A stretch of 41,443 bases of DNA from Penicillus capitatus (taxonomy: Eukaryota; Plantae; Chlorophyta). Positions 1 to 34,263 of the stretch are shown in pieces. Both the position numbers and the translations under genes were made by a program. How positions within the stretch are numbered: position 1 is the first letter of the stretch; every line of letters begins with the position of its first letter. The stretch covers positions 2,006,181 to 2,047,623 of the forward strand of contig OZ287696.1 of NCBI GenBank assembly GCA_965649825.1. The letters are read 5' to 3'. The notes under the pieces are model-generated. The model did not search any database and had not been told where the DNA came from. It saw nothing but the letters and a program-made list of their open reading frames with translations.

Positions 1-2841
1 ATTTTGGCTAAGGGATACTCGTAGAACATGGGATACAGGTTCGGCCAGGAGATGAAGCAGTTTCCTTGATGGCCCCGTCACGTGCTTGAGCATTGATACC
101 AGAAGTGTAGGCGCTTTTGGATAGGAGGAGAGATGATGCAGTCGATGGCATAACTCTCGAACAATAGTGTCACCGAATTTCAGAACCAGATCCGACACCG
201 AGGCAAACCCAAGGCTCTGTTGAAGCTACCACACAAGAAACGATCCCAGCGATCGCGTATGTTATCCAGGGGTTACTGTGAGTAATGTCTTCTTTGCAGC
301 AGTTTGAACAAAAGGAGAGGGATCCGCACACCCTTCAAGAACGAGCAGCATCCAGGAGTCCATGATGTGACAGCCAGGCTCAAGAAGACAGGTGTTCAGT
401 ACCCAACCTCCGACACGAATCCATTCCATGAGACACCGGATGAGCATCATCCGCGATCCCATTTGATGTGACGTCGCGTTTGGATCTGCTTCACTTTTCT
501 GCAGATCCATTGCATCCACCGTCTGCACAACTCTCCAAACAAATGACGCCAGGTGTGATGATGAAGTCCCATCTTCAACATTACGAGCACCGTAGATGAT
601 CTCGGTAAGTAAACAGATGTGCGTCGTGACAGTCAGGCAACGCTGCGATGCATCCTGTTCACACGTATCCATCAAACCGTCCAAGATGCGGTCCACCAGT
701 ATCTGAAGTCCTGGTACATGAGTACAGTGATACGCTGCTGGTGGTTGGTCATTGAATGCACCAAATGGGATACCTGAAGCAGATATGCGGTTTGTGGCGA
801 TCGCGCTGCTTGCTGACCTGATGCACTGCGACAGAGCTGTGTATGTGTGATGCTCGGTCATAAACACCAGAGCAGGTGGCATCTTTGGAATGCCAGTGGA
901 GAGCAGAGGGCCACGATCTGACACTTTGAGACTTCGGATTCCGTCTGTGCTGCGATACAGTGCATCCATGGCACTGGTGTCAAAGGCAAAGGCCGCGATC
1001 CATGCACGATAGAGACACTCAAGTAGCTGCATGTCATCCAGGACCCACGAAGCAAAGCGATCGCTGCCTGCAAAATGATGTGACCTGATGTCGAGGATCA
1101 TTAGAAAGAACCTGCTACACGTATGGCTACAGTTAGTAGGTGTGCTGATGTTTGCGTGTTTGCTTCTGAGCTTCTGACAGCATCCGCCAAACCTGTGATC
1201 TGCTCCTTGACCAGAGATTCAATAGCAGCCTGTAAGCCAAGTGCGAAATCGCAACCTTTGGGCTTTCCTGACAGCTGCTCCTTCACGTAATCAATGGCAG
1301 ACTGACAGGAACTGGACACCTTAGTCAACGACGGCTCAGTTTCGATGGAGTGATGATGCGAGATGCTCACTTTAGAAAAGGGATCGAGGGAAAGTGTCAG
1401 AAGGACACGTAAGAGATCTTGCACACACGATTGCAAACAGATCTTGCAGTTTTGGATCAACTGACTGACACCTGCAAAGAAAAAGATCTCAGAAATCCTC
1501 CTCCATCGTTTGGCATCGTACAGACCTTCGGCCAAAGCGATTCGCACATTTGTATGAGTATGATGCACGAGTGGGCCGAGACACTGTTCAATCAGCTTCT
1601 CGACCTTTTTGCTGCTGAACTGAAACCATTCCCACGAGCCTACCCTCACCACGATCCTTCCCCAAAATGTGAACCCTTTTGCATGCGTCACCTTCAACAG
1701 CCGGCGATTTCTTGATGTCTTGCATTTGCGATAGATCCGTGTCCTTCTCTGTGTGACTCCCATCTTTGCGCATCCTCTTACTCATTTCTTGCAGTTGAAG
1801 CAGAGGCGATTTACTAGACCACAACGGGATGTTATGTATGACAAGGAAAGATCGCGTTTCAAGGGAACGTACGGTTTCATTGTCTGAGGTGGTACCAAGT
1901 GACGAACGTGCTCATCGTTCAGGACAAAGCATAAGAGGCGTGAAAGGAGGCGAATGGCATCCTCTGTCGTTCGAGACCATGGCAGAACTGCCTCTCTGCT
2001 CTGCACCATCTTTCCTGAAGAGACAGACATCTGGTCACACGCATGCCGAGACCGCCATAAAAGAGTTGTTACCTACGGCACTGAGCAACGCTGAGAGTTC
2101 TGTTGCGGCAGCGGGCAGCACTCCAAACCACAAGGCACGGACGGAGAACACATCCAGCAACAACCGTAACACAGCAAAAGCTCCCTTTGCAACCTCCTTG
2201 TCTCCTGGAAGAGTGATCTGGCTCAGAAACGAATGAGAAAAGAGTGAGATGCCTCGCGGATGTTCTTCATGTATTTTGGCAAAGCACTGGTAAACAGCAA
2301 AGGCAAGGCAGTTGTTTAGGTCTGTCTGGTAAAGAGCTTCTTCGTTCAGTCTCTTCGATTCCCGAATCACCGTTCGCAGCAAGACTGCTAAACACTGCAA
2401 CGTCAAAATCCTGATCTGCAATGCCAAGAGTACAGCATCCAGCGGTCACATCAACCTCACGCACTTCGTTTGTCGTCTGCCTCTTTTTCAAACACATAAG
2501 ATTGAGGAGATGCTGAAACAGCGTCCAATACATTGGTACAAGACTTGTCATATCATTCTCTTTAAGTAGGTGAAGCAGCGTCTCTGCGAAATCACTCTTC
2601 TGTCACTTCATCTTGTGTAAAAGAGTAACTCACCTAGACCCTTTTCCGCCACTGCTTCGCTCCTGAAGACGCTCGATGCGCATTCTGTTGAATCACGTTT
2701 CAATTTTGAAGCAGCGTAGGTTCTCAGGACGTCCATCAGTCGAACGAGAACTTCATGACAGATGGACGGTGGCATCTTCCCCACGGACTGCCATTTCTGC
2801 ATCACACGGAAGACCTGTGTGCGCGAGGCTGTGGAATCCAT
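1..2841 (-). CDS. TTI1: TELO2-interacting protein 1 (TTT complex HEAT/ARM protein), multi-exon, 3' end runs off the window
   Basis: Collinear segments match TTI1: LQIRILTLQCLAVLL..LAFAVYQCF, LWFGVLPAAATELSALL, IRLLSRLLCFVLNDEH, WFQFSSKKVEKLIEQCLGPLVHHTHTNVRIALAE, SQLIQNCKICLQSCVQDLLRVLLTLSLDP, and LGFASVSDLVLKFGDTIVRELCHRLHHLSSYPKAPTLL (about 225-20). Start is ATG 2841 or 2874. Confidence 0.8.
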
Positions 2842-7033: not shown

Positions 7034-9516
7034 ATGGCATTTGAGTTTTTGATCAAAGCTGAAGAAGGGAAGACGTTGGAGAATGGCATCACCACGTCGC
7101 CGGTTTTTCGCTCGACGATATCCGACGGGGATTTGCTAACGGACCTTGAAGGCGACCGCACACTCTTTGAGATCTTCACACGCAGCTGCGAGACCTATGC
7201 CGCACGACCTCTTCATGGAAAACGCGAGAAAAACACTGAAGACGAGGTCGGTGACTACGTCTGGCAGACTTACGCGTGAGAAACGCCATTCTATGCGATA
7301 TGCGGCGCCGATTTTTGTCTCTGTCTTTAAGCGAGGTGCAGGAAACGGCGTTTCATGTTTCGAAAGGCATGCGGCTGCAAGGATGCGAAAGCGGTGCTAG
7401 AGTTGGCATATATGGACCCAATTCTCAACAATGGACTCAAGGAATGCTGGTCGGCAGCCCCGAATTATGGGAGATCACCAATGGCCATTCTCTCTTGTGT
7501 CGCCTAGGCGTGTTTGTATTTTTCCGCCGTGTGCGTGCCACTGTACGATACTCTCGGGCCGGATGCCGTGGAACATGCGATCCTCCACGGAGAGATTGAG
7601 TTTATCTTCGTATCGGAGAAACACTGCAAGGCATTGGGCAATGTGGTAACGCACATGGGAACAAAAGCCAATCAGATTCGCGAGATCTGTTGGTGGTCCG
7701 ATTCCAATGTTCCGGAATCGGATATCACGGATGCCACCCAAGTGATTCGGAAAGGCAAAAGAGTGAGATGTGTGTTCGACTTTGGCATGTTTAGATATTT
7801 ACGAAAGCGGGAATCCAAGTGGAGAGCTGGACGGATCTGATTCAACGGGGAAAGGCAACACAGGCAACGGCACTGCAGAATCCTGTCCCGGCCACAGATC
7901 CAGCATCGATGGCGCTTTTGATGTACACCAGCGGAACGACAGGTTCTCCTCCGCGAGGAGCGAAATGCGTGTGACCATCTGACTCCTTGCAGGTGTTCCC
8001 AAAGGCGTCGTCCTTTCACAGAAGGCCATCACATCGACAGTCGCCTCTGCCGTCAGATCACATGTGTCCTTGACGTGATCGAGCATTTGTGCGGTGTCTG
8101 AACAGGTCGCTTACTTAAGGAAGATGCATCTCCTTCCTGAACAGGCTGTGCATTTGTCGTGGCTGACCTGTGCCCATGTCTATGGCTTCGTAATGGAAAT
8201 CGTTTGCATTGCGGTGGGAGGGAAGATCGGTTACTGGCAGGTGTCCTGCGTTGCGAACGGCTGGTCTGGAGATGACGGCTGTGTGATGCAGGGCAAAGTG
8301 GACAAGCTCATGGACGACATCGCCGCACTGAAACCAACTCAGTTCTTCGCCGTTCCACGTGTCTGGACACGCATCATGGACACAGCGACGCGGAAAATTG
8401 AAAGCAGAGGAACAGTTACCAAGTGTGTCGGATGCAAACCTTTTCCGTCTTCTCTTGCAAACGAGTGGCGATCATAGATATCTCTACGACTCAGGCTACT
8501 CTTACAAGAAATCTGTCCTGGAAAGTGGATCGCAGGGAGGTCTATTGACAGCGGGTTTGGATTATCTCCTTTTCTCGAGAGTGAAACAAGCACTCGGAGG
8601 ACACGTCATCTTCGTCGGCTCCGGTGCAGCACCTCTTCCCCGTCATGTCGAAGAGTTCCTCAGAGTGTCGCTCACTGTCCCCCTTATGCAAGGTACTTCC
8701 AGCACCGTTCGTGGATGATGATATGACGGGAGAGCTTCAGGCTATGGACTCACCGAGACCTGCGCACTGACCTGCGCTTCTCATCCGAATCATCACGATC
8801 ATCTCGGAACGGTGGGAGCTGTCATGCCGTGTGCCGAACTGCGCCTTCAGAGTGTTCCTGAGATGGGCTACGACGCACAAGGCTCTGCCCCTGCCGGCGA
8901 AATCTGCTTCCGTGGACCCTGTCTCTTCTCCGAATACTACAAGAACGCGGAGGAGTATCGGAAAGTGGTTGACAGCGACGGGTTCTTCCACACAGGCAGG
9001 TCACGCATTCTGTATCTCTCTTACCGACGTCGGCCTTCAGGGGACATCGGCGAGATTCAGCCGAGCGGTGTCATCAAGATCGTCGACCGGATCAAAAACA
9101 TCTTCAAGCTCTCTCAAGGAGAGTACGTCGCCGTCGAGAAGATCGAGTCTGTGCTGCAGCAGGCATCGACGGTTGGACAGATCTGGGTTTACGGAGATAG
9201 TCACCAGCGCTTTTTGGTGGCCATCGTCCATCCAAATGTCCACAAAGTCGGACACCTCCTGCACGACAGTGCCTCTCTCGACGAGATCTGCAAGTCGGAC
9301 GCCGTGAAGGCCGAAGTGCTGAAGGACTTGACGGAGACGGGCAGAGCTTCTGGACTGAAGGGATTCGAACGCGTGCAGAATATTGGGCTGGTAACTGAGG
9401 AGTTCACGGTCGAGAACGGACTGATGACGCCCTCCCAGAAACTCAAGAGACACGATCTCCTGAAGCGCTACAAAGAAACCATCGACGCTCTTTACAGCGA
9501 ATCGAGCACGTCTTGA
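7034..9516 (+). CDS. LACS: Long-chain acyl-CoA synthetase (AMP-binding), multi-exon
   Basis: VCVPLYDTLG, YTSGTTG/VPKGV AMP-binding motif, FFAVPRVW, SGAAPL, QGYGLTET, GEICFRGP, FHTG/DIG, IVDRIKNIFKLSQGEYVAVEKIE, NGLMTPSQKLKR. Confidence 0.95.
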
Positions 9517-10713: not shown

Positions 10714-11817
10714 TTAACATCGATTCCAAGGAAAACACAATGGATCTGTCCAAACGAAAGACTCTCCGTTTGTAAAAGTGAGATGACCACGAGCGTTCTG
10801 CACTTTCTTTTGGACAGCGTGGGTATCAGGGTAACCATAGAAAGGCACTCCCAATCTCCACAGCTTCCATGCCTGGTAATAGATCCAGAAGGCCACTCGA
10901 TGCGGCTGAAATCCAAATCTGCAAAGACAACGTCACACATTACTCCTGGGTCTTAAATGATGGGCGGACTTCAGAAGAGTTCTGAGACCACAACGTTCGC
11001 TGCGTCCCTGTTTGACACTGCGCTTGACGTGTAAGATGGCTTCGAAGAAGGGACCCATTTCCGGATGACGTGCACGCACCGACAGTGTGAGATTATCTTC
11101 GCGGATATCGCTTTGAAGTGTCCAGGAAGATTCCATGTCCATGAAGGGAGACACATGCAAAGCCTTGTCCACCGTTTCACCTGTTGGATCAAAGGCGAAG
11201 CGTACCCGTGCACCCCATGGCGTATTCGTCACCTAATTTCCTTCGACGATGAACACAGAGATGCCCCATAAGCTGAACATCCACTCACCTCTGCGATGCA
11301 CTTCTCCAATGTGTCATAGGGAGAGTAGCAGTAGTAGACGCTGATGGGATTCTGCACGTAGCCGCATGAGGCAGGACTCGTCAAGAGTCTGACCGGACCT
11401 GCCAACGACGCGTCTTTCTTTTTGTGAGGGTGCGCAGGAGGTACCTTCCGTGCCGGCCATTTTGCGGACCTCCTTAGCAGACCAGTGATCTCTAGATTGC
11501 GATGCAAACCAGGAAGGGGTGTTGTCCAGGTCGATACACGCCAGTCGGATGGGGTACCTACATCAAGAAATTGGAGAGTGGATGAGAAAAGATCAGGCTC
11601 ACGTAAACGTGTTCTCCACTGGCTTCCGACGCCTGTGCACCACGGTGCCTTCGTAGAAGTCGCACGTGCCATCGGTGTCAAGATCCGACCTGCCGCAGAA
11701 GACAAGGCAGCAGGACCACAGGATAGCTGGAATCGCCGTTAGTATGCTGCCCAGCGCACAGGCCATGCTCAACAAAAGGGACACTGCCTGGCAGAGCAAA
11801 AACACCAATTCCTGCAT
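10714..11817 (-). CDS. DUF1365 family protein with N-terminal hydrophobic segment
   Basis: FYEGTVVHRRRKPVENTF, GPVRLLTSPASCGYVQNPISVYYCY, IAEV/TNTPWG, KALHVSPFMDM, AFWIYYQAWKLWRLGVPF; ATG 11817 (MQELVFLLC). Confidence 0.85.
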
Positions 11818-12671
11818 CACGGACGCGACAGACGACGAGAATCGCGAATTCGCCAAGTGCTGCGAATGAAGTCCATTTCTGCGATGTATGCATCATATCA
11901 AACAAAAAGCGAGCTATGCCGATGGAAGCAGCTTCTGTTGCGAGATCCGCGATACATGCAGTTCGCATAGGCGACGAAGAAAACTTAGGCGACGAGACGA
12001 GAACAGTAGTATCACATGTTGCTCTGTGACATGTGCATGAGTCCGTGTATCAACGAGGCAGTCATCTCTCACGGTCTATACTCTCGGCTTAGTTCAATGT
12101 GGACAGTGGTTATCGAAGCCCCAAGGACTGAGCAAATACAGATCTGGACTCCTGAATCCGTCGACAGTCTCTACTCAGACTTATACCCATGATACAAAGA
12201 ACGTTAAGCAGTGCACCTAATGTATGTATGTCGCAACGGCACCAACACGTACCCTTTTTGGAGAGGCCGGGGATTCCGTGTGTCTTTCGACGATCCATCT
12301 ACTCAAACACGCTCGACAGTTCCACAGCCGCTCGCTTGTGCAAAGAAAGATCGAAGCGTTGTTTACGAGGATTCTCACGCACTGACCACGTCAGCGGATA
12401 TCAGTCCTCATGAAGCACACATATTGTGTCCATCATATCATCGGATTCGAATGCGGACTGCCGACACATTGCTGTCACTCTTACATGGCATGTTTTTGAA
12501 ACAACAGCTTAGACATACGTGTGGTATTGCATCATCCGAGGGAATGCCCTTACCAAATCCAATCGCAGCCTCTAAAGAATCAATCTATCCAAGCGGAAAT
12601 ACACAGAGGGTGAAACACAAAGACTCATCCGTTTTTATTCTCGTAATCAAACCTTATGAGACATGAGGTAA

Positions 12672-15600
12672 CTAGCTTGTAGGGTGCATTGCCAGTTCTT
12701 TCAACTTGTCGGAAAGAAACGTCACTTGGTACCACATTTCTCCAATGAAATCATTGATGTGTGACATCGACCAAACCGGCTGCAGGTCGACAATCCATCT
12801 CAAGTCCAAGACTCTCTCTTCCATCGCAAAGGTCTTGGATATGCTCCTCGGTCGGCTCTTGACTCTCATCTCTTTCAGAACGAGAGTGGCACATCGCCAG
12901 AAGACTGTCACGTCTGAGCTTCTGAATTTGAATTCCTTCTGGGAAACGAGCTTGAACGCTTCGACACATGGCATGACTTCTGAGTGGATGACAGGACTGC
13001 CATCACCATCCACATTGGATACCTTTGGATGCAGTATCCCCGACAGGAATGACAGCATTTCCGGTTCTTCGTATGGAGTGCGTGATGTCAGATCGTACCG
13101 AATGTCCATCTCCTTCCTCTCCTCAAAGAAGCGCTTCACATCGATTGTCATCCAGTGCAGTGGAGGATAGAAGGCGGATGTCAGACAGAGCTCTGCATCG
13201 TACATCGCCATAATACTGTGGAACTTGCTGCGGAGAAGCAGTTCATAGCCCTCTCTTCTGTCAATCTCATCTAGACCGTACTCTTCTTGAAGCAAACGTT
13301 CCAGAGCAACGAGGGAAATCCTTGGATGCATACGAGGATAGAAAGCGGAGTGTGCATAGTCCTTTGTGGGATCGTCTACTGTCCATCTGAAATTCTCCAT
13401 CTCCTTCTTCCATCGCTGTGGCTGCTGCACATGTTGCTTCGCATCTTTGTCAATAAAGTCCCGCAGTTCTGCCAATGAGATGCCGTCTGGATCTTCCATC
13501 ATCTCCTTCGGCGGACAGATGAGATAGAACTTACCATAAGAGATCTCAAGCTTCAGAGATCCATGCACGACAGGACTGTAGCTCTCTTTATCGGCCTGAC
13601 GAATTCTCTGCAATCTCTTTATGAAAAAATTCCCGAACTCCTGGAACTTTGCTGCACTCAGGTCGTACAGCGCATCGGGAATCTTCTCAGACGGATGAAG
13701 TACGCGCAGGACATAGATGCCTCTGTAGTCATCCATTGGGTATCGAATCCCGACATAGTCTTCAAATGTGACGCCCTTCTCTTTGAGACAGTGGATCCCT
13801 TCGATGATGCACTTGTGGCTGTCTGGCAGAAAGAGCTCCATGACACCAGGGTATTCCCTCAATGTGCTGTTCCGGGCATCGACATTAGACTTGAACTGCT
13901 CCAGGAGTCGTTCGACAGAAAAGATGCCTGTCTGTGTGCCTATAATCTTGATAAGGAGGCTGCCGTCTCTTCTTCCCTTCTGGTGGACTTCGATCAATGT
14001 GTCTGTCTGTTTTGCATAGAGACGGGCAAAGAATTCTTCGGATCCCTGCATTCTCTTGGCGGAAGAGGGTGACAGGGAGATCACTTTTTCGGTCTCCACT
14101 TGTTCGAAGAGCGGCGGGATGGAACCATGAAACGAGAGCTTGTGGAATGCACGTTGCATCTCCTCTTGCAGCAAGTGTGTTGCGTCCGTGGTGCTCGTCT
14201 GGTTGTAACTTGTGTGACCGAATATTTTGACGAGACTTTTGTGCACTGGAGTCAGCGCACTCCTCTCTTGTTCAGAGAAAAATCCGAGCAGCAGCTCCCC
14301 CATCGGCGCAGCTGAACTGCAGTCCTCCTTCAATCTGTTGAGGATGTCGTTCCAGACTTCCGTCTGAGCAAAGCGTCCGAAATCTTTGATATCAGCAAGA
14401 ACCTGGAAAAGACCAAGTCCTTCAGAGACGCAGCTGTTATGGGTCAGTAGATGAACCTTGTCGACATCTACAGGTTGATGAATCTGCCCACATCTGAGGC
14501 CGTAATCTATCACCATCATCGATATGGTGAGACTGTCCATGAAGGAGTTCTTCCCAGACACCAGGAACCCCGTCGCCTGAGCCCATTTGACGACCACTCT
14601 GAGAAGAGGAAGGAGCCACGGATAGTGGTAGATGTACTCCAGAATTAGCTCAGACTGCGCCCAGCAGAGGGGATCCATCGCAAAATGTCCACTCGCACGG
14701 CAATTGAGTGATGGGATGAATCCGTCAAAGTAGATGAGCTGCCTTCTCCCGGCTTGCACCGTGCGACACTTGATATTATGCTCACGTAGACATTGCCGGA
14801 TCGTCTGCATCTGTTCTTTCAAGGCTTGCTGATGGAAAGGGTCGCCTTGGAAGAGATGACGGTCCAGACCACTGAACCACAGGAGCATTTCAGTCTCGGG
14901 ATAATCCACATCGTGCAACAAGTTATATGTCAGTCCATAGAGAAATGGAAGAAAAACAGGGTCTTGTCCTCCCAAAACAACCTCCTCCATGTATTTCCTA
15001 GATACGACACGCTTCAGCATGAATGCATTCAGAGAAGGCACAACTTGACAGCAATCTGTGCTTCAAAGATATGAAGAAGGCTTTCGGAATCCCTGTCGAG
15101 GAAACGGTAGACGGATCGTCCGATGCATTCCTTCACGCCATCGATGGACACCGAACTGCGTCTCCTCTTATAGAGCTTCAAGAGATACTCAGAAGGAATC
15201 CACGCAAAGCTCAGGAATGGCGCTGCTGTTTTGCCAACACTGTATCTCTCTGCATTCTCTGATGGACTGTAGCAGACATAGTGCCAAGCGGCCGCCTTGC
15301 ACATGGCCTTCTCCTCGTCGATCCACTCATCTGTGTGAATCCTCTTGTCCTGCAGCACACAGCTCTTCTCCAAATGGAGTGCCAAAACTGTTGACGTACT
15401 TTGTTAAATAGATCCTTGTACTTTTCAATGAGTTGTGTCTTTAGTGTGGAAAGAAGACCGGTCACGTCGTATGCCTCCTTTCCGATTTTGTCATGGAGTT
15501 TCTCAACGAAACCCGACATCAGTTCGCCTTCCGTGCGGATGCCATACATCGACATCAGAGCACGTAGGGCGCCATTGTATTGCCGACGGAGCTTGCGGGC

Positions 15601-18516
15601 ATCCTCTAAGAATGGTTTCATCCCATCGATCACGAAAATGGATCTGTCGAGTGCAGCATCGACGCTTGTGAAATTGATTCTATGAATGCTGCAGATGTTG
15701 AGAAACTTGGTGCATTCTCTGTACATGCGCCCAAGCACTTTCTCTGAAGGATAAGATGGCTTGTCCTGTTTCATCATGAAATCAGGATACTTGTCCAACA
15801 GTTTGCGTATATTGTATGGAATCATCGCCCATTTCCCTGTTTTGGGCGCATCCACCGCCTACATCCAATCAACCTTGCCAGAAACTGCACCGGCAACATG
15901 TTGAGCGCACTTGGCTGTGAATTCTGGCCAGTTCGAGGCACGGCGTCGAATCGATGCCCAACTGATCTGCCAAGGCTTTGTGTGCATTGTCGATCTGTCC
16001 AATGCAATCGTGCATAATGGTCTACACATCCAAATCCACTAGAGTGTGCCCACGAGGCTCTCAGTTTTCTCACTTGTTTTAGAAAGCGTAACATGTCTTC
16101 TGATGTGATATCACGACTTGTCTGTTCGGCCTTCGTCGTAGCGTACTCCATAGGTGGTTTGTTGGGTGTCTTTGGAACCAGATCACTGCTCCAGATGGTG
16201 TGATACATATCGCCATCCAAATCAGATCCAGACAGTTCATTGGGATGGGGTCTGTCACCTTTGCTTGGGAAAACAATGCAGTCACACATGTGATGTAACG
16301 CCGGACAGTCGACGGCATCGAACACACGAACATCCCCTGCAGCAACACTCGACATCTCTCTTTCTATCCATCGCAACAGACCTGGATGGAGGCAGGGGCT
16401 CTTACCGACCACAATCTTTTGTTGGAGGACGATTTTTTCGATACCGGGGTTGTTGAGGTACTTAGAGATCTGCACAAACACCTGACCGTATTCCAACGTC
16501 TGGGTCTCGTCCACCGTTCCTAACAGCATTCTGCCATCGGAGCGGGGAATCGGAATTCTGGATTTCTCTCTCAATCTCTTCATCTGCTGCCTACGTTCAT
16601 GACACATAGCATTTGCAAACCGTCCGTGTATGTGTGATCGATGCCAAACCTGTACAACGCCATCAGCATCGATCTGAAGTACGGATCCATTGTCACGACA
16701 AAATTCGCTTCACTCAGCTGTTCCCAGTTGATCCCACAAGACACCGAAAGCAATTTGCTTCGTGCGATCTCTTCATTGACGAACATTGCCGATAGACTTT
16801 CGAGATTTGCTTTCAACAGCTCCAGAAATACGCCGTCTGAGATGCCCAAATGACTGAGTAACATGATCAGCTGCATAATCACCACATATCTTCAGAAAGC
16901 GATTTCTGAAAGAGCAATGACCTGTTGGTTGAGATGAAGCTCTTGCGGACGGGAACAGTTTGACAAGACTTCGATCGTCATATGTGGTGACCAGTACTTT
17001 AACATACTCGTGCGCAGACAGAGCTTCTTATTAGGATGCTTCCGTTGAAGGTCTGGATCGACGGCGACCACTCCTTTACATCCTCCAAATCGAATCTGAA
17101 AAGCACAAGGCACTGCACTCGGCAATCCCAGCTTTACAGCCACCTACACCAGTCACATCACGACATCCACTTCTCTACCTTGTCCAGCACACACACCTTC
17201 TCAGCCAAGTCCTGTGAGATCTTGCCGATGCCATCTGTAAAGCAGTAGTCCCTCACAGTGACGTCTTGGATACGGACACAGTCGCTTGGATTAATTGCGA
17301 CAGTGCTGGTGGATGTAGAGAAGATCTGTCCCAGGCGTGAGATGTACTTGGCCACGTTGTGAATGCTCTCCAGATTTCCAGCCCATGCTCGAATCTCCAT
17401 GGCAATCTCTTTCTCCTCCGTCGCGTCCACAAAGAAACAACCATGATCACGGACTTGGTTGTTGGAACATCCCAGAAACTCAAAACGTTTGCTGCCAATG
17501 ACCAGGCCCTCCTTCAGCTCATCATAGATACATTTCAAGACGTGTTCCTGATTGCCTTTGCTCGAACTGAGCTTCGAGAAGTTATCGTCTCGGATCGTCA
17601 CTCTCAGAAACTGCGCTTTCTTACCCCACTCTCTCAGCACTCTGTTGGATTGAATGATGTCTGCCTCGTAGAAAATCCTCCTTGTCGGGGTCAATACCAA
17701 TCTGGGCACTCTGCAATGCTTAGCAGGGTCCTGCACCTCTGTTCTGGGAAATCCGCGTTTCAAAGCGTCATCAAATGCCTGGACTGGATCCACGAAGAGA
17801 TCATCACTCATCTGTCTCGTCAGTGATTGCAGCACATCCACAGCTAGAGATTCGGTGCAATCATTTAACCGTTCAAAGAACGCATCCGTAAACCGTTCTC
17901 TTACGAAACCCGGCGACGAAACGAGGCAGAGCCAAGCCCATTGCACTATCCACGCCTCACAATGTCGAATCTGTTGCGGAATGTCGTAAATGTGTCCGAC
18001 TGTAGCGGCATCTTCCACTGTAATCTCTTTCGCCGTGATCTCCTTCCCGACCGCCAGCAGAAATCCGAGAAACGTGTCGAGCACGGATCTCTGGTCGCTC
18101 GTAAACCTCCAGCGAAGCGTACGACAAGTGGCGAACGTCCAACGCGATACCCTTCGTCCAGCAAGCTCGAGTTCCTGCTGTCTCATGGCGAACTCGAGGT
18201 CTTCTCGGTGGTCCTTGTGCTTGTAAATGCGAGGAGGATGCTTCAGGGTGATGAAAACTGACGCTGTGGGAGTTGTCTCGTCGAGGAAGACGGCGTCGTC
18301 GAGTTCTCGAGTCAAGAACTCGATGCAGATGTTGGCGGGGAGGAGAATGGCCACATCACGCACACAGAAGTTGAGGAAGGCCTCCGTACGTGATGTGGCC
18401 AGCCTCTCCACCGGTACAAAGCGCGTCCGGGTGACGAGGCGCCCGAACTCGATGTCGACAACCGGAAGACGGGCCGACCTAGCCCGAGGTTCGACGCGAC
18501 CCACACTGGAAGACAT
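12672..18516 (-). CDS. RDR: Eukaryotic RNA-dependent RNA polymerase (RDR1/2/6-like) with long C-terminal extension (degenerate nucleotidyltransferase, KH-like and unknown domains); about 1,800 aa if fused
   Basis: LVLTPTRR, SNRVLR, FLRVTIRDD, RFEFLGCSNNQVRDHGCFF, NVAKYISRLGQIFSTS, YCFTDGIGKIS, AFQIRFGGCKGVV, KSPCLHPG/DVR, DCIVFPSKGDRPHPNELSGSDLDGD (DLDGD at 16209-16223), KAAAWHYVCY..FLSFAW. RDR identity is firm; fusion to the 12672-14997 exon depends on a predicted 47-nt intron at 14998-15044. Confidence 0.9.
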
Positions 18517-20800: not shown

Positions 20801-22128
20801 TTAAACTGGAACAGCAGCAGCAGCAACAGTGGCAGATGTGACAGTTGGTGCAGAATTGAGTGTTGATGCCAGTGTTGGAACGATGTTGTTATTGAGGTCA
20901 TCGTTCGATTTCGAAGGATCCTCTTCACCTACGTATCTCCGAATAAACGGATGCTCCAGTGCTGCGTTGGTGTCCATTCTGGTCTTGTAGTTCTTGTCCA
21001 GGAGTTTTTGGAGAAAATCCAAACATTCTGCGGAGATGCGATCGAACGGTTCGTTTGTGAAGTCGGGATCGTTGAGATGTACAGTTTCCATCACGTCTTG
21101 CACCGAAGACATCAAAGCCGTCTGTGTCGAGTCCCAAAAAGGAAACCGGCCAGAGATCAACTGGTACAGAACAATTCCCAGACTCCAAAGGTCGGATTCA
21201 AAAGAGTAATCGCGATCGAAAACCTCAGGAGCCATAAACACGGGTGTCCCCACACGAGACGACATACGTTTGCCATCTAACACGTCACATCATGGCTCAA
21301 ATTCAAGGATGGTCACACTTTTGTGATGGGACTTACTTAGAATGTACTGACTACAGCCAAAGTCGATGGCCTTGAGCCATCCCTTCGTCAAACCACTGGT
21401 ATCGTTCGTCGCAAAAGGGTTCTCCTTGGATGAACGCAGAATAAAATTGGCTGTTTTTACATCGCCATGCACGATACGATTGGCATGGCATTTCTTCAAG
21501 GTGAGCAAAATCTCGTAAGCCACATGAGCTGTCACTTCTTCCGACGCAGGTCCGTATCGCTAAACACCCATCACACATGTCCGTCACATCATCATGCTCA
21601 CAACAAGCAGCAAGTACGCACTCTTATTTGCTCTCTCAGGTCTAAGCCCGAGCAATACTCCATGACGATGCGGTAACTGTTGGGCAAGGCATGACATTCT
21701 TTGAACTGAACGGCAGCGGGACATGTTTTCACATCTTGCATGACGCAGATTTCGCGATCGACTTTGGCAAAGGTCCCTTCAGCTGTAAGTCGTCCCCTGC
21801 GTCGCGGCATCTCTTTTACGGCGACTCTTTGACGCGTCGCCTTTTCCGTGGCTAACCACACTTCCCCAAAACTGCCACGTCCTATGCTCTCTTCAAGGAT
21901 GAAACGCTCGTTGAAATCGTCCTTCCATGCAACCAAAGAGGCATACGATGCCGGACACGTCGCCATCGCTCGATTGAGTGTTGTCCGGCGTCGACTGTAT
22001 CGCAATGCAAAGGCGTCTTTCCGGTAGAGACGGGAGGACGGTGATGTAGAGAGTGATGATCTCAGTCCATTTCCACCTCGTGACCCGCCGGGCAGGGAGC
22101 CCGAACGAACATACACACGTTGCATCAT
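20801..22128 (-). CDS. CDPK-related Ser/Thr protein kinase without EF hands
   Basis: IGRGSFGEV, VAVKEM, HGDVKTAN, KAIDFG, GTPVFMAPE, SDLWSLGIVLYQLISGRFPF; two introns; stop follows soon after the kinase domain. Confidence 0.9.
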
Positions 22129-32254: not shown

Positions 32255-34263
32255 ATGGTGGACCTTGTAAGCACGTTAAGCGCCATCGTCGTGGCGTGCG
32301 TTGTTTTCTTCTTCGTCCATCGCGTGGCAAATCTCTTCACCTCTAAAGACGAAAACCTCCAACACGGAGACGCATCGGAGGAGAACAAAGGCAATGACGG
32401 CAGCGAAGCGGTCTCAAACGACGAACTCGCCATACGAATTCTCTTCGGAACACAGACGGGCACGGCCGAAAAGCTCGCCAAAGAAATGCGGTCCAAAATT
32501 TACGAAGTGTATGGTACCGAAGCTGTCAAAGTCTACGTTGAAGATGTCGAATGCTATCGACCCAGTGAACGCTTCCACAACGAACGCTATGTGTTTCTCT
32601 TTGTCGCGACCTATGGCGACGGCGAGCCCACAGACACGGCTGTGGAATTTGATCAGTGGCTGACAGGAGCCGAAGAAGTGGGCGAAGAAATCCTGCACGG
32701 CGTCCGATTTGGCGTCATGGCTCTGGGCAATCGAGAATATGAACATTTCTGTATCTTTGGCGCCAAGGTCGATCAAGCAATGGAACGCCTCGGAGCGCAG
32801 CGGATCGTTGACCGAGTGGACGGAGATGACAGCAAATGCATCGAAGACGATTTCGAAAACTTCGCCAAGAATGCCTTGGACGCGTTGGCCAACGAAGAAG
32901 CCTTCCGGAACATCGAAGTCGATGTGCCACAGAAACTGACGGTGCAGAACGTTCCGGCGTACAAAGTGATTTTTGATCCGGCTGAGAAAACGCAGACGAC
33001 GCAGAAGACACGAGCCGCTGGACAGACGACAGACATCGCATGCGTCTCGTCGATTCGCGAGCTGCATACGGAGCGATCCGATCGATCGTGTGTTCATGTG
33101 GAGTTGGATATCTCTATGAATGATGTGACGTATCAAGCAGGCGATCACGTGGCCATTCAACCGGAGAACTGCCCTGAGCTCGTAGAAGAGGCGGCAGCTT
33201 TTCTGGGATGTCCACTCGATACACGCTTCTCCCTGGAGATGCCATCGGACAACGAAGAAGACTTGGAGCCGCCGTTTGCCGGTCCAGTGACACTCAGAGA
33301 GGCCCTGATGCGATATGCCGATCTGACGAATCCCCCACAGAAGCACTCGATGAAACTGCTGTCTGCCTTCGCCACGAATCCAGACGAGGCAGAACAGTTG
33401 TTGTTCTTATCGTCTGTGGATGGCAGAGAGAAATTCACACAGATGGTGCACAACAACGCCATGAGTTTGCTGGAGCTTATGCAGGAATTCCCATCTGCCA
33501 AGCCAGATCTGGGTGCCTTCTTTGGATCGATCTGCCCCCGTGTGCAACCGCGCTACTATTCTATTTCGTCCTCCCCAGCCCAAACGCCGCAACACATTCA
33601 CGTGACGGCAGCCGTGGTGCATGAAAAGAAGCCGAGTGGTAAGATCCACAAAGGCGTCTGTACAAACTGGCTCAGTACTCGAGAACTCGGCGCTCGTGCT
33701 GCGATTCACGTTCGGACATCGCATTTCAAGCTTCCGTCTGATCCAAGCGTGCCCGTTGTGATGGTTGGGCCCGGAACAGGAATTGCTCCTTTCAGAGGTT
33801 TTCTGCAAGAAAGGGCCAAGTTAAACGCCAATGGGGTGTCATTGGGTCCAGCTTTGCTCTTCTTCGGTTGTCGCCATCCCGAAACGGACTATATCTACCA
33901 GGAGGAATTGGAAGGCTATGTGAACGACGGTACCTTGACCGCACTCCATGTCGCCTTCTCTCGCGAGACCGACAAGAAAGTCTACGTCCAACACAAGCTC
34001 CTCGAGAACAGTACTTAATCCGCACTCTCACTCTTTTTCTAATACATTGTGTGATGTGACCCGTAGAGGAAGAAGTGTGGAGCCTGCTACATGAAAAGGG
34101 TGGTTATTTTTATGTGTGTGGCGATGCGAGTCGTATGGCACGCGATGTCCATCGAACACTGCACGAAATGGCAGAAAAAGTAACGGGTGTAACAGGGTCA
34201 AAGGTGGAGCAGATCATCAAGACTCTTCACGATCAGGGACGTTATCAAAAAGACATCTGGTAG
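32255..34263 (+). CDS. CPR: NADPH-cytochrome P450 reductase
   Basis: N-terminal membrane anchor; FGTQTGTAE (FMN), ATYGDGEPTD, LGNREYEHF, RSCVHVELDI, QPRYYSISSSP, VMVGPGTGIAPFRGF, LFFGCR, YVQHKL; one intron; YVCGDA..RYQKDIW*. Confidence 0.97.

Follow-up and report, generated by a model that had tools for sequence, protein, structure and literature searches.

The RNA-dependent RNA polymerases (RDRs) of RNA silencing work with nucleotidyltransferases of the Cid1 family that act in trans, namely Cid12 in the RDR complex of S. pombe (RDRC; Rdp1-Hrr1-Cid12), Rdn1 and Rdn2 together with Rdr1 in Tetrahymena, and MUT-2/RDE-3 together with RRF-1 in C. elegans; in some of these systems a helicase is present as well. 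An RDR gene on the minus strand of a 41,443-nt stretch of the genome of the green alga Penicillus capitatus (contig OZ287696.1, positions 2,006,181 to 2,047,623; the whole stretch is referred to as the window) shows the same association of an RdRP with a Cid1-family fold, but here the parts are predicted to be covalently fused, the nucleotidyltransferase lacks its catalytic residues, and a KH-like domain and a putative triphosphate-tunnel domain are added, for neither of which we know of a counterpart in the RDR complexes of the three organisms. The family of this protein also includes helicase-bearing paralogues (P0050, P0054, P0055, P0056), in which helicase, RdRP and nucleotidyltransferase are found on one chain, an arrangement that mirrors Hrr1-Rdp1-Cid12. 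RDRs with extra fused domains have been described previously from Dictyostelium (RrpA-C), oomycetes, Hydra and Nematostella, the domains noted in them being a helicase and the RdRP alone (PMC4791657, PMC3661229). In contrast to these, the window protein contains no helicase, and the module consisting of nucleotidyltransferase, KH-like and tunnel domain is not mentioned in those studies; the Nematostella protein LOC5511133 (P0056) belongs to the family presented here. An RDR with a hard-wired nucleotidyltransferase partner and an added 5'-triphosphate tunnel is a conserved arrangement that has apparently not been described. Homologous sequences indicate that it is not peculiar to P. capitatus, as it is found also in the siphonous green algae Caulerpa, Bryopsis and Ostreobium, in oysters and, in part, in further animals.

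As derived from splice boundaries, the gene (18516..12672) consists of nine exons and eight GT..AG introns and encodes a single protein of 1811 amino acids (Table 1). The RDR part comprises a weak PH-like match at the N-terminus, the RdRP core and a head region, which ends with the motif KAAAWHYVCY..FLSFAW in exon 8. The Pfam RdRP family PF05183 was recognized on the successive exon-sized open reading frames (ORFs) between 18516 and 15211 with E values of 7e-41, 4e-19, 2e-7, 8e-51 and 2e-5 (141, 69, 30, 174 and 24 bits, all above the gathering cut-off of 23.8), the DxDGD catalytic loop is intact (SGSDLDGDMYH, from protein residue 693), and the full-length protein as query retrieved RDRs with E values down to 0.

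A preliminary description of this locus, made from the letters of the DNA, had claimed that the gene continues beyond the KAAAWHYVCY..FLSFAW motif into a 2.3-kb intronless exon, and several lines of evidence bear this out. The in-frame TGA of the RDR frame (15031-15029) falls inside a short junction intron, whose removal links ...EAQIAVK to KYMEEVV... (KYMEEVVLGGQDPVFLPFLYGL) within a 789-codon open frame (15041..12672), and which resembles the other seven introns of the gene in size and splice sites (53, 51, 59, 45, 52, 52, 50 and 47 nt, in order, the junction intron being the last). A word-indexed search of 5.8 billion proteins returned a sole close relative of the extension, P0001 (88% identical). 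Its gene lies on L001, a metagenome contig of 646 kb in which a kinase, the RdRP pieces, the extension and DUF1365 are in synteny with the window. Spliced at the same boundaries, L001 yields GT..AG introns of 45-55 nt and an open frame of 1811 amino acids as well. Aligned at the nucleotide level, the two sequences are 85-94% identical in the exons, where indel lengths are divisible by three apart from a single difference of 2 nt just before the stop codon, and 67-85% identical in the introns, with indels not divisible by three in five of the eight. Between the window and L001 the ratio of nonsynonymous to synonymous substitution rates (dN/dS) stays under 0.2 in all 150-codon blocks, with values of 0.10 over the RDR part and 0.13 over the extension. 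In addition, a single unbroken ORF or gene model holds both RdRP and extension in P0003 (Caulerpa), P0008, P0009, P0013 and P0050-P0057. Because the junction intron behaves as an intron, L001 splices in frame and relatives carry RdRP and extension contiguously, these sequence comparisons support the conclusion that the RDR and the 2.3-kb last exon encode one fused protein.

All introns of the RDR gene are of nearly uniform length (45-59 nt); their donors are variable (GTNNNN), their acceptors read [CT]AG, and those of L001 (45-55 nt) are similar. The 2-nt indel near the stop codon (window 12672-12700, L001 ~12300-12322) makes the ends of the two proteins read AMHPTS* and AKYPPQAN*, respectively; the extreme C-terminus is unconserved.

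The extension comprises the 774 residues that follow the RDR part. It had been described as a nucleotidyltransferase module; this holds for about 300 residues, whereas the KH-like and tunnel domains, which make up more than half of it, had gone unseen. The motif strings on which that description was built were all found within a few bases (PFLYGL, 14948-14931; ETEML, 14897-14883; VKWAQ, 14591-14577; MGELLLGFF, 14303-14277). The 789-aa ORF has no Pfam match at E<=1 (PF22600, PF01909 and PF03828 were not found on the window sequence), so that the fold could be reached only via homologues. Against the PDB the single extension sequence gave two matches only, both to C. elegans GLD-2 at the stretch VKWAQ..MMVIDY (E 0.15). 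An exhaustive HMMER search yielded 36 relatives of the extension, and the full-length query widened the family further; the first alignment (37 sequences), used as word-indexed query, was dominated by RdRP words and returned two proteins.

A profile of extension residues 1-375 built from 20 sequences matched GLD-2 (1.7e-11), TbTUT4 (2e-7) and Cid1 (3e-5) in the PDB, and also RET1, URT1, CutA, TUT4/7 and mtPAP. With a control profile restricted to the helicase-less subgroup with degenerate motifs GLD-2 still came first (1.1e-4), the match being limited to the central domain. Among the 20 family members four contain PF22600 (MTPAP-like palm; best E value 2.6e-17), NTP_transf_2 is also recognized in members, and Pfam nucleotidyltransferase models match the homologues P0013, P0022, P0024, P0055 and P0056. 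The AlphaFold2 model of residues 1-375 reached a mean predicted local distance difference test score (pLDDT) of 84.3 and a predicted template modelling score (pTM) of 0.85, and the top 50 Foldseek matches to it in the PDB were all terminal uridylyltransferases (TUTases) or non-canonical poly(A) polymerases (probability 1.0). In the model, strands of the palm are formed by residues 15-19, 34-41 and 76-106; the central domain includes YIYHYPWLLPLLRVVVKWAQATGF, MDSLTISMMVIDY and MGELLLGFF. The TUTase-like fold proposed in the preliminary description is thus confirmed at the level of profiles and models, which support a Cid1/GLD-2-type pol-beta nucleotidyltransferase fold with palm and central domain. 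The bi-domain fold and the motifs ..Y...P.LLPL.RV.K.W.. and ..LGELL..FF.. are shared with GLD-2, Cid1, TUT4-7 and TbTUT4 (PDB 4zrl, 4fh3, 5w0n and 2ikf). In contrast to these enzymes, which stand alone, the domain is an internal part of an RDR, its sequence identity to them is 12-15%, and their GS, DxD and third Asp correspond to GL, ExE and His.

Between the nucleotidyltransferase and the tunnel domain the AlphaFold2 model shows the beta-alpha-alpha-beta-beta-alpha topology of a type I KH domain (strands 302-308, 334-340 and 346-353; helices 310-316, 320-331 and 355-374), and the family profile matches the KH domains of IGF2BP1/2 (5e-4) and KH3 of hnRNP K (0.01) in the PDB. The GXXG loop between the helices is absent, the window reading QGSE and the family [AG]-G-[SK]-E, and the domain is for this reason labelled only KH-like.

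The C-terminal domain is, according to its predicted structure, a triphosphate tunnel of the Cet1 type. The AlphaFold2 model of the C-terminal 419 residues (window 12675-13931) has a pLDDT of 86.4 and a pTM of 0.88, and its six best Foldseek matches in the PDB are all RESC1/RESC2 chains (E values 4e-12 to 3e-8, ~390 aligned columns). Similarity to RESC1/RESC2 extends over the whole domain, the best match being 8cdp_B (4e-12; TM-scores 0.51/0.61; 387 columns). These are followed by Cet1 (1d8h, 2e-6), Pct1 (4.5e-5) and T. cruzi Cet1 (6.7e-4), each with probability 1.0, and then by CYTH/TTM proteins; in a viral structure library giant-virus mRNA 5'-phosphatases (1e-5) and capping enzymes were found. 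By sequence the domain has no significant match in Pfam or the PDB (bromodomain and Ki-67 appeared at E~0.5-1, DUF7903 below threshold). The family shares the motifs hhhEG, EDY..HP.HD, HG...L.h.FG+.Y, SFF, W...DVKR, DIRF/Y and SRP, of which the K and R of DVKR and the R of DIRF hardly vary among the members from green algae, animals and other protists.

RESC1 and RESC2 (GAP1/GAP2; PDB 8cdp, 8fn6), the heterodimer that binds guide RNA in trypanosome RNA editing, are the best structural matches and share the Cet1-like fold predicted for the RDR tunnel. Their metal-binding glutamates are incomplete, and those of the RDR tunnel may be so too. The fold of RESC2, in which two of three such glutamates are gone, binds the 5'-triphosphate of guide RNA non-catalytically (PMC10201420). 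However, these are free-standing mitochondrial proteins of trypanosomes, whereas the RDR tunnel is fused and without significant sequence similarity to them, and binding to the 5'-triphosphate of a small RNA that is a primary transcript, as reported for RESC2, is a prediction for the RDR tunnel. With Cet1, Pct1 and the mRNA 5'-triphosphatases of giant viruses the tunnel fold is common and some family members have an ExExKFG-like strand, but the candidate strand of the window has K-x-E-x-S, a guanylyltransferase partner is absent, and the protein belongs to RNA silencing and not to capping.

The local hidden Markov models (HMMs) of both halves of the extension, run over 119 RDR homologues (P0051 onward), detected the module in 16 of them. 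The whole architecture (RdRP, nucleotidyltransferase, KH-like domain, tunnel) is present in Caulerpa, Bryopsis, Ostreobium and the oyster Crassostrea; in Bryopsis two paralogues have the module. Caulerpa lentillifera g8969.t1 (1766 aa), EukProt P0052 (1801 aa), Bryopsis sp. KO-2023 BSKO_01283 (P0051, 2034 aa) and Ostreobium quekettii P0054 (2571 aa) each cover 99% of the 1811-aa query, and Crassostrea virginica P0057 (1760 aa) covers 89%; to its best named relatives, which are Bryopsidales, the window protein is 39-40% identical. Partial modules occur in Nematostella (nucleotidyltransferase part only), Saccostrea (tunnel part only), the scallop Pecten (in part) and the hemichordates Ptychodera and Glandiceps (central region of the nucleotidyltransferase only), and the module was also found in several metagenome or transcriptome proteins, some with helicases, such as P0050 (2488 aa; N-terminal helicase, RdRP and extension). 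It was not found in plant RDR1/2/6 or fungal RDRs among the 119 homologues. Judging from these sequences, the four-part architecture is an old, conserved family under purifying selection.

Helicase-bearing paralogues of the type DEAD/Helicase_C - RdRP - nucleotidyltransferase, some also with the tunnel, are P0055, P0056, P0054, P0050 and P0142; those of Bryopsis and Nematostella and P0050 have canonical GS and DxD motifs, and the Ostreobium copy is degenerate. Across the family, most of the members in which GS, DxD and the third Asp are canonical have a helicase at the N-terminus. P0128, P0129 and P0142 are Asn/Lys-rich RDRs with nucleotidyltransferase and tunnel; the helicase is complete in P0142, whereas in the other two Helicase_C is matched. 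An amino acid composition of this kind points to AT-rich protists such as dictyostelids, and if this is true, Dictyostelium RrpA-C may carry the module too.

RDRs elsewhere depend on separate Cid1-family enzymes, and RDR products begin with a 5'-triphosphate. On these grounds we propose, by analogy and with moderate confidence, that the extension is an RNA-end-handling module on the RDR, acting in the window copy by binding rather than catalysis. The pseudo-nucleotidyltransferase cleft would, together with the KH-like domain, grip the template at its 3' end or along its single-stranded body, and the tunnel would bind the 5'-triphosphate of the de novo-initiated product, as RESC2 does with guide RNAs; this grip might couple synthesis to hand-over of the product. 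Because both accessory catalytic centres of the window copy look dead, binding would be its likeliest role, instead of tailing or dephosphorylation, whereas relatives with intact motifs might perform tailing or triphosphate hydrolysis.

Several points weigh against this proposal and the domain assignments underlying it. The AlphaFold2 alignments contained only 20-21 sequences including canonical members, which may pull the degenerate palm toward the canonical fold, and the Foldseek TM-scores are moderate (0.4-0.6). The tunnel domain shows no significant sequence match to Cet1 or RESC1/2: the best E values for PF25477 were 0.018 and 0.065 (at best 12.5 bits, compared with a cut-off of 27), and HMMER gave no match to the RESC chains in the PDB. 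The conserved lysine and arginines are candidates for residues that line the tunnel. The E-x-E pair of the nucleotidyltransferase together with the histidine could still bind metal. Finally, the gene model derives from the DNA sequence and the domain assignments from profiles and predicted structures, and which RNA end each domain might bind, if any, is deduced by analogy.

A different role for the extension, as mainly a protein scaffold for dimerization or for recruitment of Dicer or Argonaute, its enzyme folds having lost contact with RNA ends, appears to us not very likely. It would be consistent with the absence of GXXG from the KH-like domain and with the degeneration of both catalytic centres. 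Moreover, Cet1 is also dimeric. RESC1 and RESC2 form a domain-swapped dimer via the same fold (PMC10201420). However, the near-invariance of the K and R of DVKR and the R of DIRF in such distant organisms fits ligand binding better, and conservation of the nucleotidyltransferase is highest in those motifs of the central domain that line the cleft for nucleoside triphosphate and RNA in GLD-2.

The nucleotidyltransferase could still be enzymatic and tail the 3' end of the template or product in cis, with metal bound by E-x-E and His or by nearby acidic residues; we regard this as unlikely. An E-x-E is found at the DxD position in L001, P0005 and P0007 as it is in the window, purifying selection on extension residues 1-150 equals that elsewhere (omega 0.12), and paralogues with canonical motifs exist (P0013, P0022, P0024, P0055, P0056): P0013 reads VIFGSS..SDIDL..ARIPIF..CVDLCA, P0022 and P0024 are alike, and GS and DxD are retained in BSKO_02950 of Bryopsis and LOC5511133 of Nematostella, both of which have a helicase. 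In the window, however, the hG[GS] motif, which is F-G-S in canonical members, reads Y-G-L, with Leu in place of Ser; the DxD pair is E-T-E (14897-14889), and K-L-E, R-V-E, Q-I-E or E-V-N in relatives; and the third Asp, that of CVDLCA, SCDISA and RIDITA, aligns with the His of SGHFAM (14690-14676). The nearest relatives vary freely at the three motif positions (Caulerpa GI/KLE/C and GT/ELE/C, Bryopsis GL/EAD/H, P0011 GM/QIE/V, Ostreobium GL/KIE/E, and P0007 with E/E/R for the DxD pair and the third Asp), K, R, Q, C and V all being found there, which indicates that the catalytic constraint has been lost. The window nucleotidyltransferase is thus probably a pseudo-enzyme, as had been suggested in the preliminary description. 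Its reading of the lost motifs holds for YGL, for ETE and for the disappearance of the third Asp; the residue in the place of the latter is His and not Gly. The Asp of FAMDPL was considered as a retained third catalytic Asp and rejected, since both MAFFT and hmmalign put the His of SGHFAM at this position and the Asp four residues later.

Likewise, it is improbable that the tunnel is an active RNA 5'-triphosphatase, which would turn the ppp-RNA made by the RDR into pp- or p-RNA usable by Dicer or Argonaute. In C. elegans PIR-1 reportedly converts ppp-RNA to pp-/p-RNA in trans. The structural matches to Cet1, Pct1 and viral mRNA 5'-phosphatases would suit such an activity, and in some members a strand of the type E-x-E-x-K-F-G resembles motif A of Cet1 (ExExK), for example AELEIKFG in P0030; we infer the equivalence of the strands from their pattern, not from superposition. 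However, the putative strand reads K-L-E-I-S-Y-G in the window and is incomplete in most named members, including those of Caulerpa, Bryopsis, Ostreobium and oysters, and the structures matched best are those of RESC1/2, which are catalytically dead and without two of the three metal-binding glutamates. In the window as in L001, the in-frame TGA is followed 39 nt downstream by an ATG in the next reading frame, which might be read as two genes, an RDR that stops at 15029 and a separate protein encoded by the 2.3-kb ORF from the ATG at 14990. This is extremely improbable, and the two-gene model was rejected since ~40 nt are too short for a terminator and a promoter, the tail of the RDR frame from donor to stop is unconserved (LCLL* in the window, nine different residues in L001), the interval behaves as the other seven introns with in-frame splicing also in L001, and the ORFs of relatives run from RdRP into extension without a break.

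An extension of the end-handling proposal, which we put forward only tentatively and hold to be doubtful, is that the nucleotidyltransferase-KH-tunnel module has accompanied one RDR lineage since its ancestor, being retained in green algae, several phyla of animals and other protists, and clamps both RNA ends, and that RESC1/2 are free-standing descendants or siblings of the RDR tunnel. The 3'-OH of the template would lie in the (pseudo)TUTase cleft and the nascent 5'-triphosphate in the tunnel, which could set the start of copying and protect or hand over ppp-small RNAs. If true, the machineries of RNAi amplification and of U-insertion editing would be linked; in the latter, too, TUTases are paired with a binder of 5'-ppp-RNA. 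For RESC1/2 no homologues outside kinetoplastids have been reported (PMC10201420), and the module may supply the first. That RESC1/RESC2 chains match the RDR tunnel better than Cet1 does, despite that statement, is a separate observation that hints at a possible evolutionary link.

Automatic annotation already records part of this architecture: in Pfam the canonical paralogues carry both PF22600 and PF05183, and the proteins are in public databases under the labels hypothetical, uncharacterized or simply RNA-dependent RNA polymerase. Full-text searches found no paper that describes the architecture, and nothing on RdRP combined with nucleotidyltransferase, fusion and Nematostella, or with triphosphate tunnel and RNA interference (RNAi); an earlier mention in the review of Burroughs, Ando and Aravind (2014) is possible. 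A nucleotidyltransferase is not mentioned in the studies of Pinzon (2019), Bollmann (2016) and Wiegand (2013) on animal, oomycete and Dictyostelium RdRPs, and about 700 conserved residues appear to have been overlooked in the published descriptions of helicase-RdRP proteins.

In the family described here, tasks divided among partner proteins in other organisms seem to be placed on one chain. RDRs need partners that mark or hold template ends, and how product 5'-triphosphates are handled is a matter of current interest for small-RNA pathways, those of nematodes included; a single chain with RdRP, TUTase-like, KH-like and tunnel domains would suit structural and biochemical study of the coupling between choice of the template, initiation and hand-over of the product, and the family offers versions with active-looking and with dead accessory centres. 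The module is also found, wholly or partly, in animal RDRs whose function is unknown, namely those of oyster, scallop, sea anemone and acorn worm. RNAi induced by double-stranded RNA has been reported to work in Bryopsis, in a paper that does not mention an RDR (PMC12961179), and since the Bryopsis genome contains paralogues with dead and with canonical nucleotidyltransferase motifs, genetic tests are feasible.

Table 1. Parts of the RDR gene, in window coordinates, and the evidence for each
Feature	Position	Strand	Evidence or remark
Exons 1-5	18516-17197, 17143-16922, 16870-16650, 16590-16382, 16336-16074	-	
Exons 6-9	16021-15911, 15858-15400, 15349-15045, 14997-12672	-	
RDR part (protein residues 1-1037)	15045..18516	-	PF05183 on every exon-sized ORF; PF26253 RdRP_head on homologous L001 pieces
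Junction intron, 47 nt, GTTGTG...TAG	14998..15044	-	69% identity to L001; 51 nt there
Nucleotidyltransferase palm sub-domain, degenerate (extension residues 14-107)	14676..14957	-	Alignments with canonical P0013, P0022, P0024, P0055, P0056; AlphaFold2; Foldseek
Nucleotidyltransferase helical central / PAP-associated-like domain (extension residues 108-298)	14103..14675	-	GLD-2 matches
KH-like domain (extension residues 300-375)	13872..14099	-	AlphaFold2 secondary structure and profile matches
Predicted triphosphate-tunnel domain (TTM/CYTH, Cet1/RESC1-2-like; extension residues ~385-770, ~390 aa)	12687..13844	-	AlphaFold2, Foldseek, conserved columns
Tunnel motif LKLEISYG	13556-13533	-	
Tunnel motif DVKR (W...DVKR)	13145-13131	-	
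Tunnel motif DIRF/Y	13106-13095	-	
Stop codon	12674-12672	-	

The RDR gene is flanked by a DUF1365 fragment (11229-11705, minus strand) and a protein-kinase fragment (21598-22128, minus strand), and the order of these neighbours is identical in L001. Elsewhere in the window, exon-sized ORFs at 8812-9516 (plus strand) and 1101-1763 (minus strand) show weak matches to the C-terminal domain of AMP-binding enzymes and to the N-terminal TPR region of TTI1, respectively, and the remaining large ORFs of the window have no Pfam match. An uninterrupted ORF of 587 amino acids at 32255-34018 (plus strand) contains Flavodoxin_1, FAD_binding_1 and NAD_binding_1 and resembles NADPH-cytochrome P450 reductase; unlike the RDR gene, it is intron-less over its stretch.

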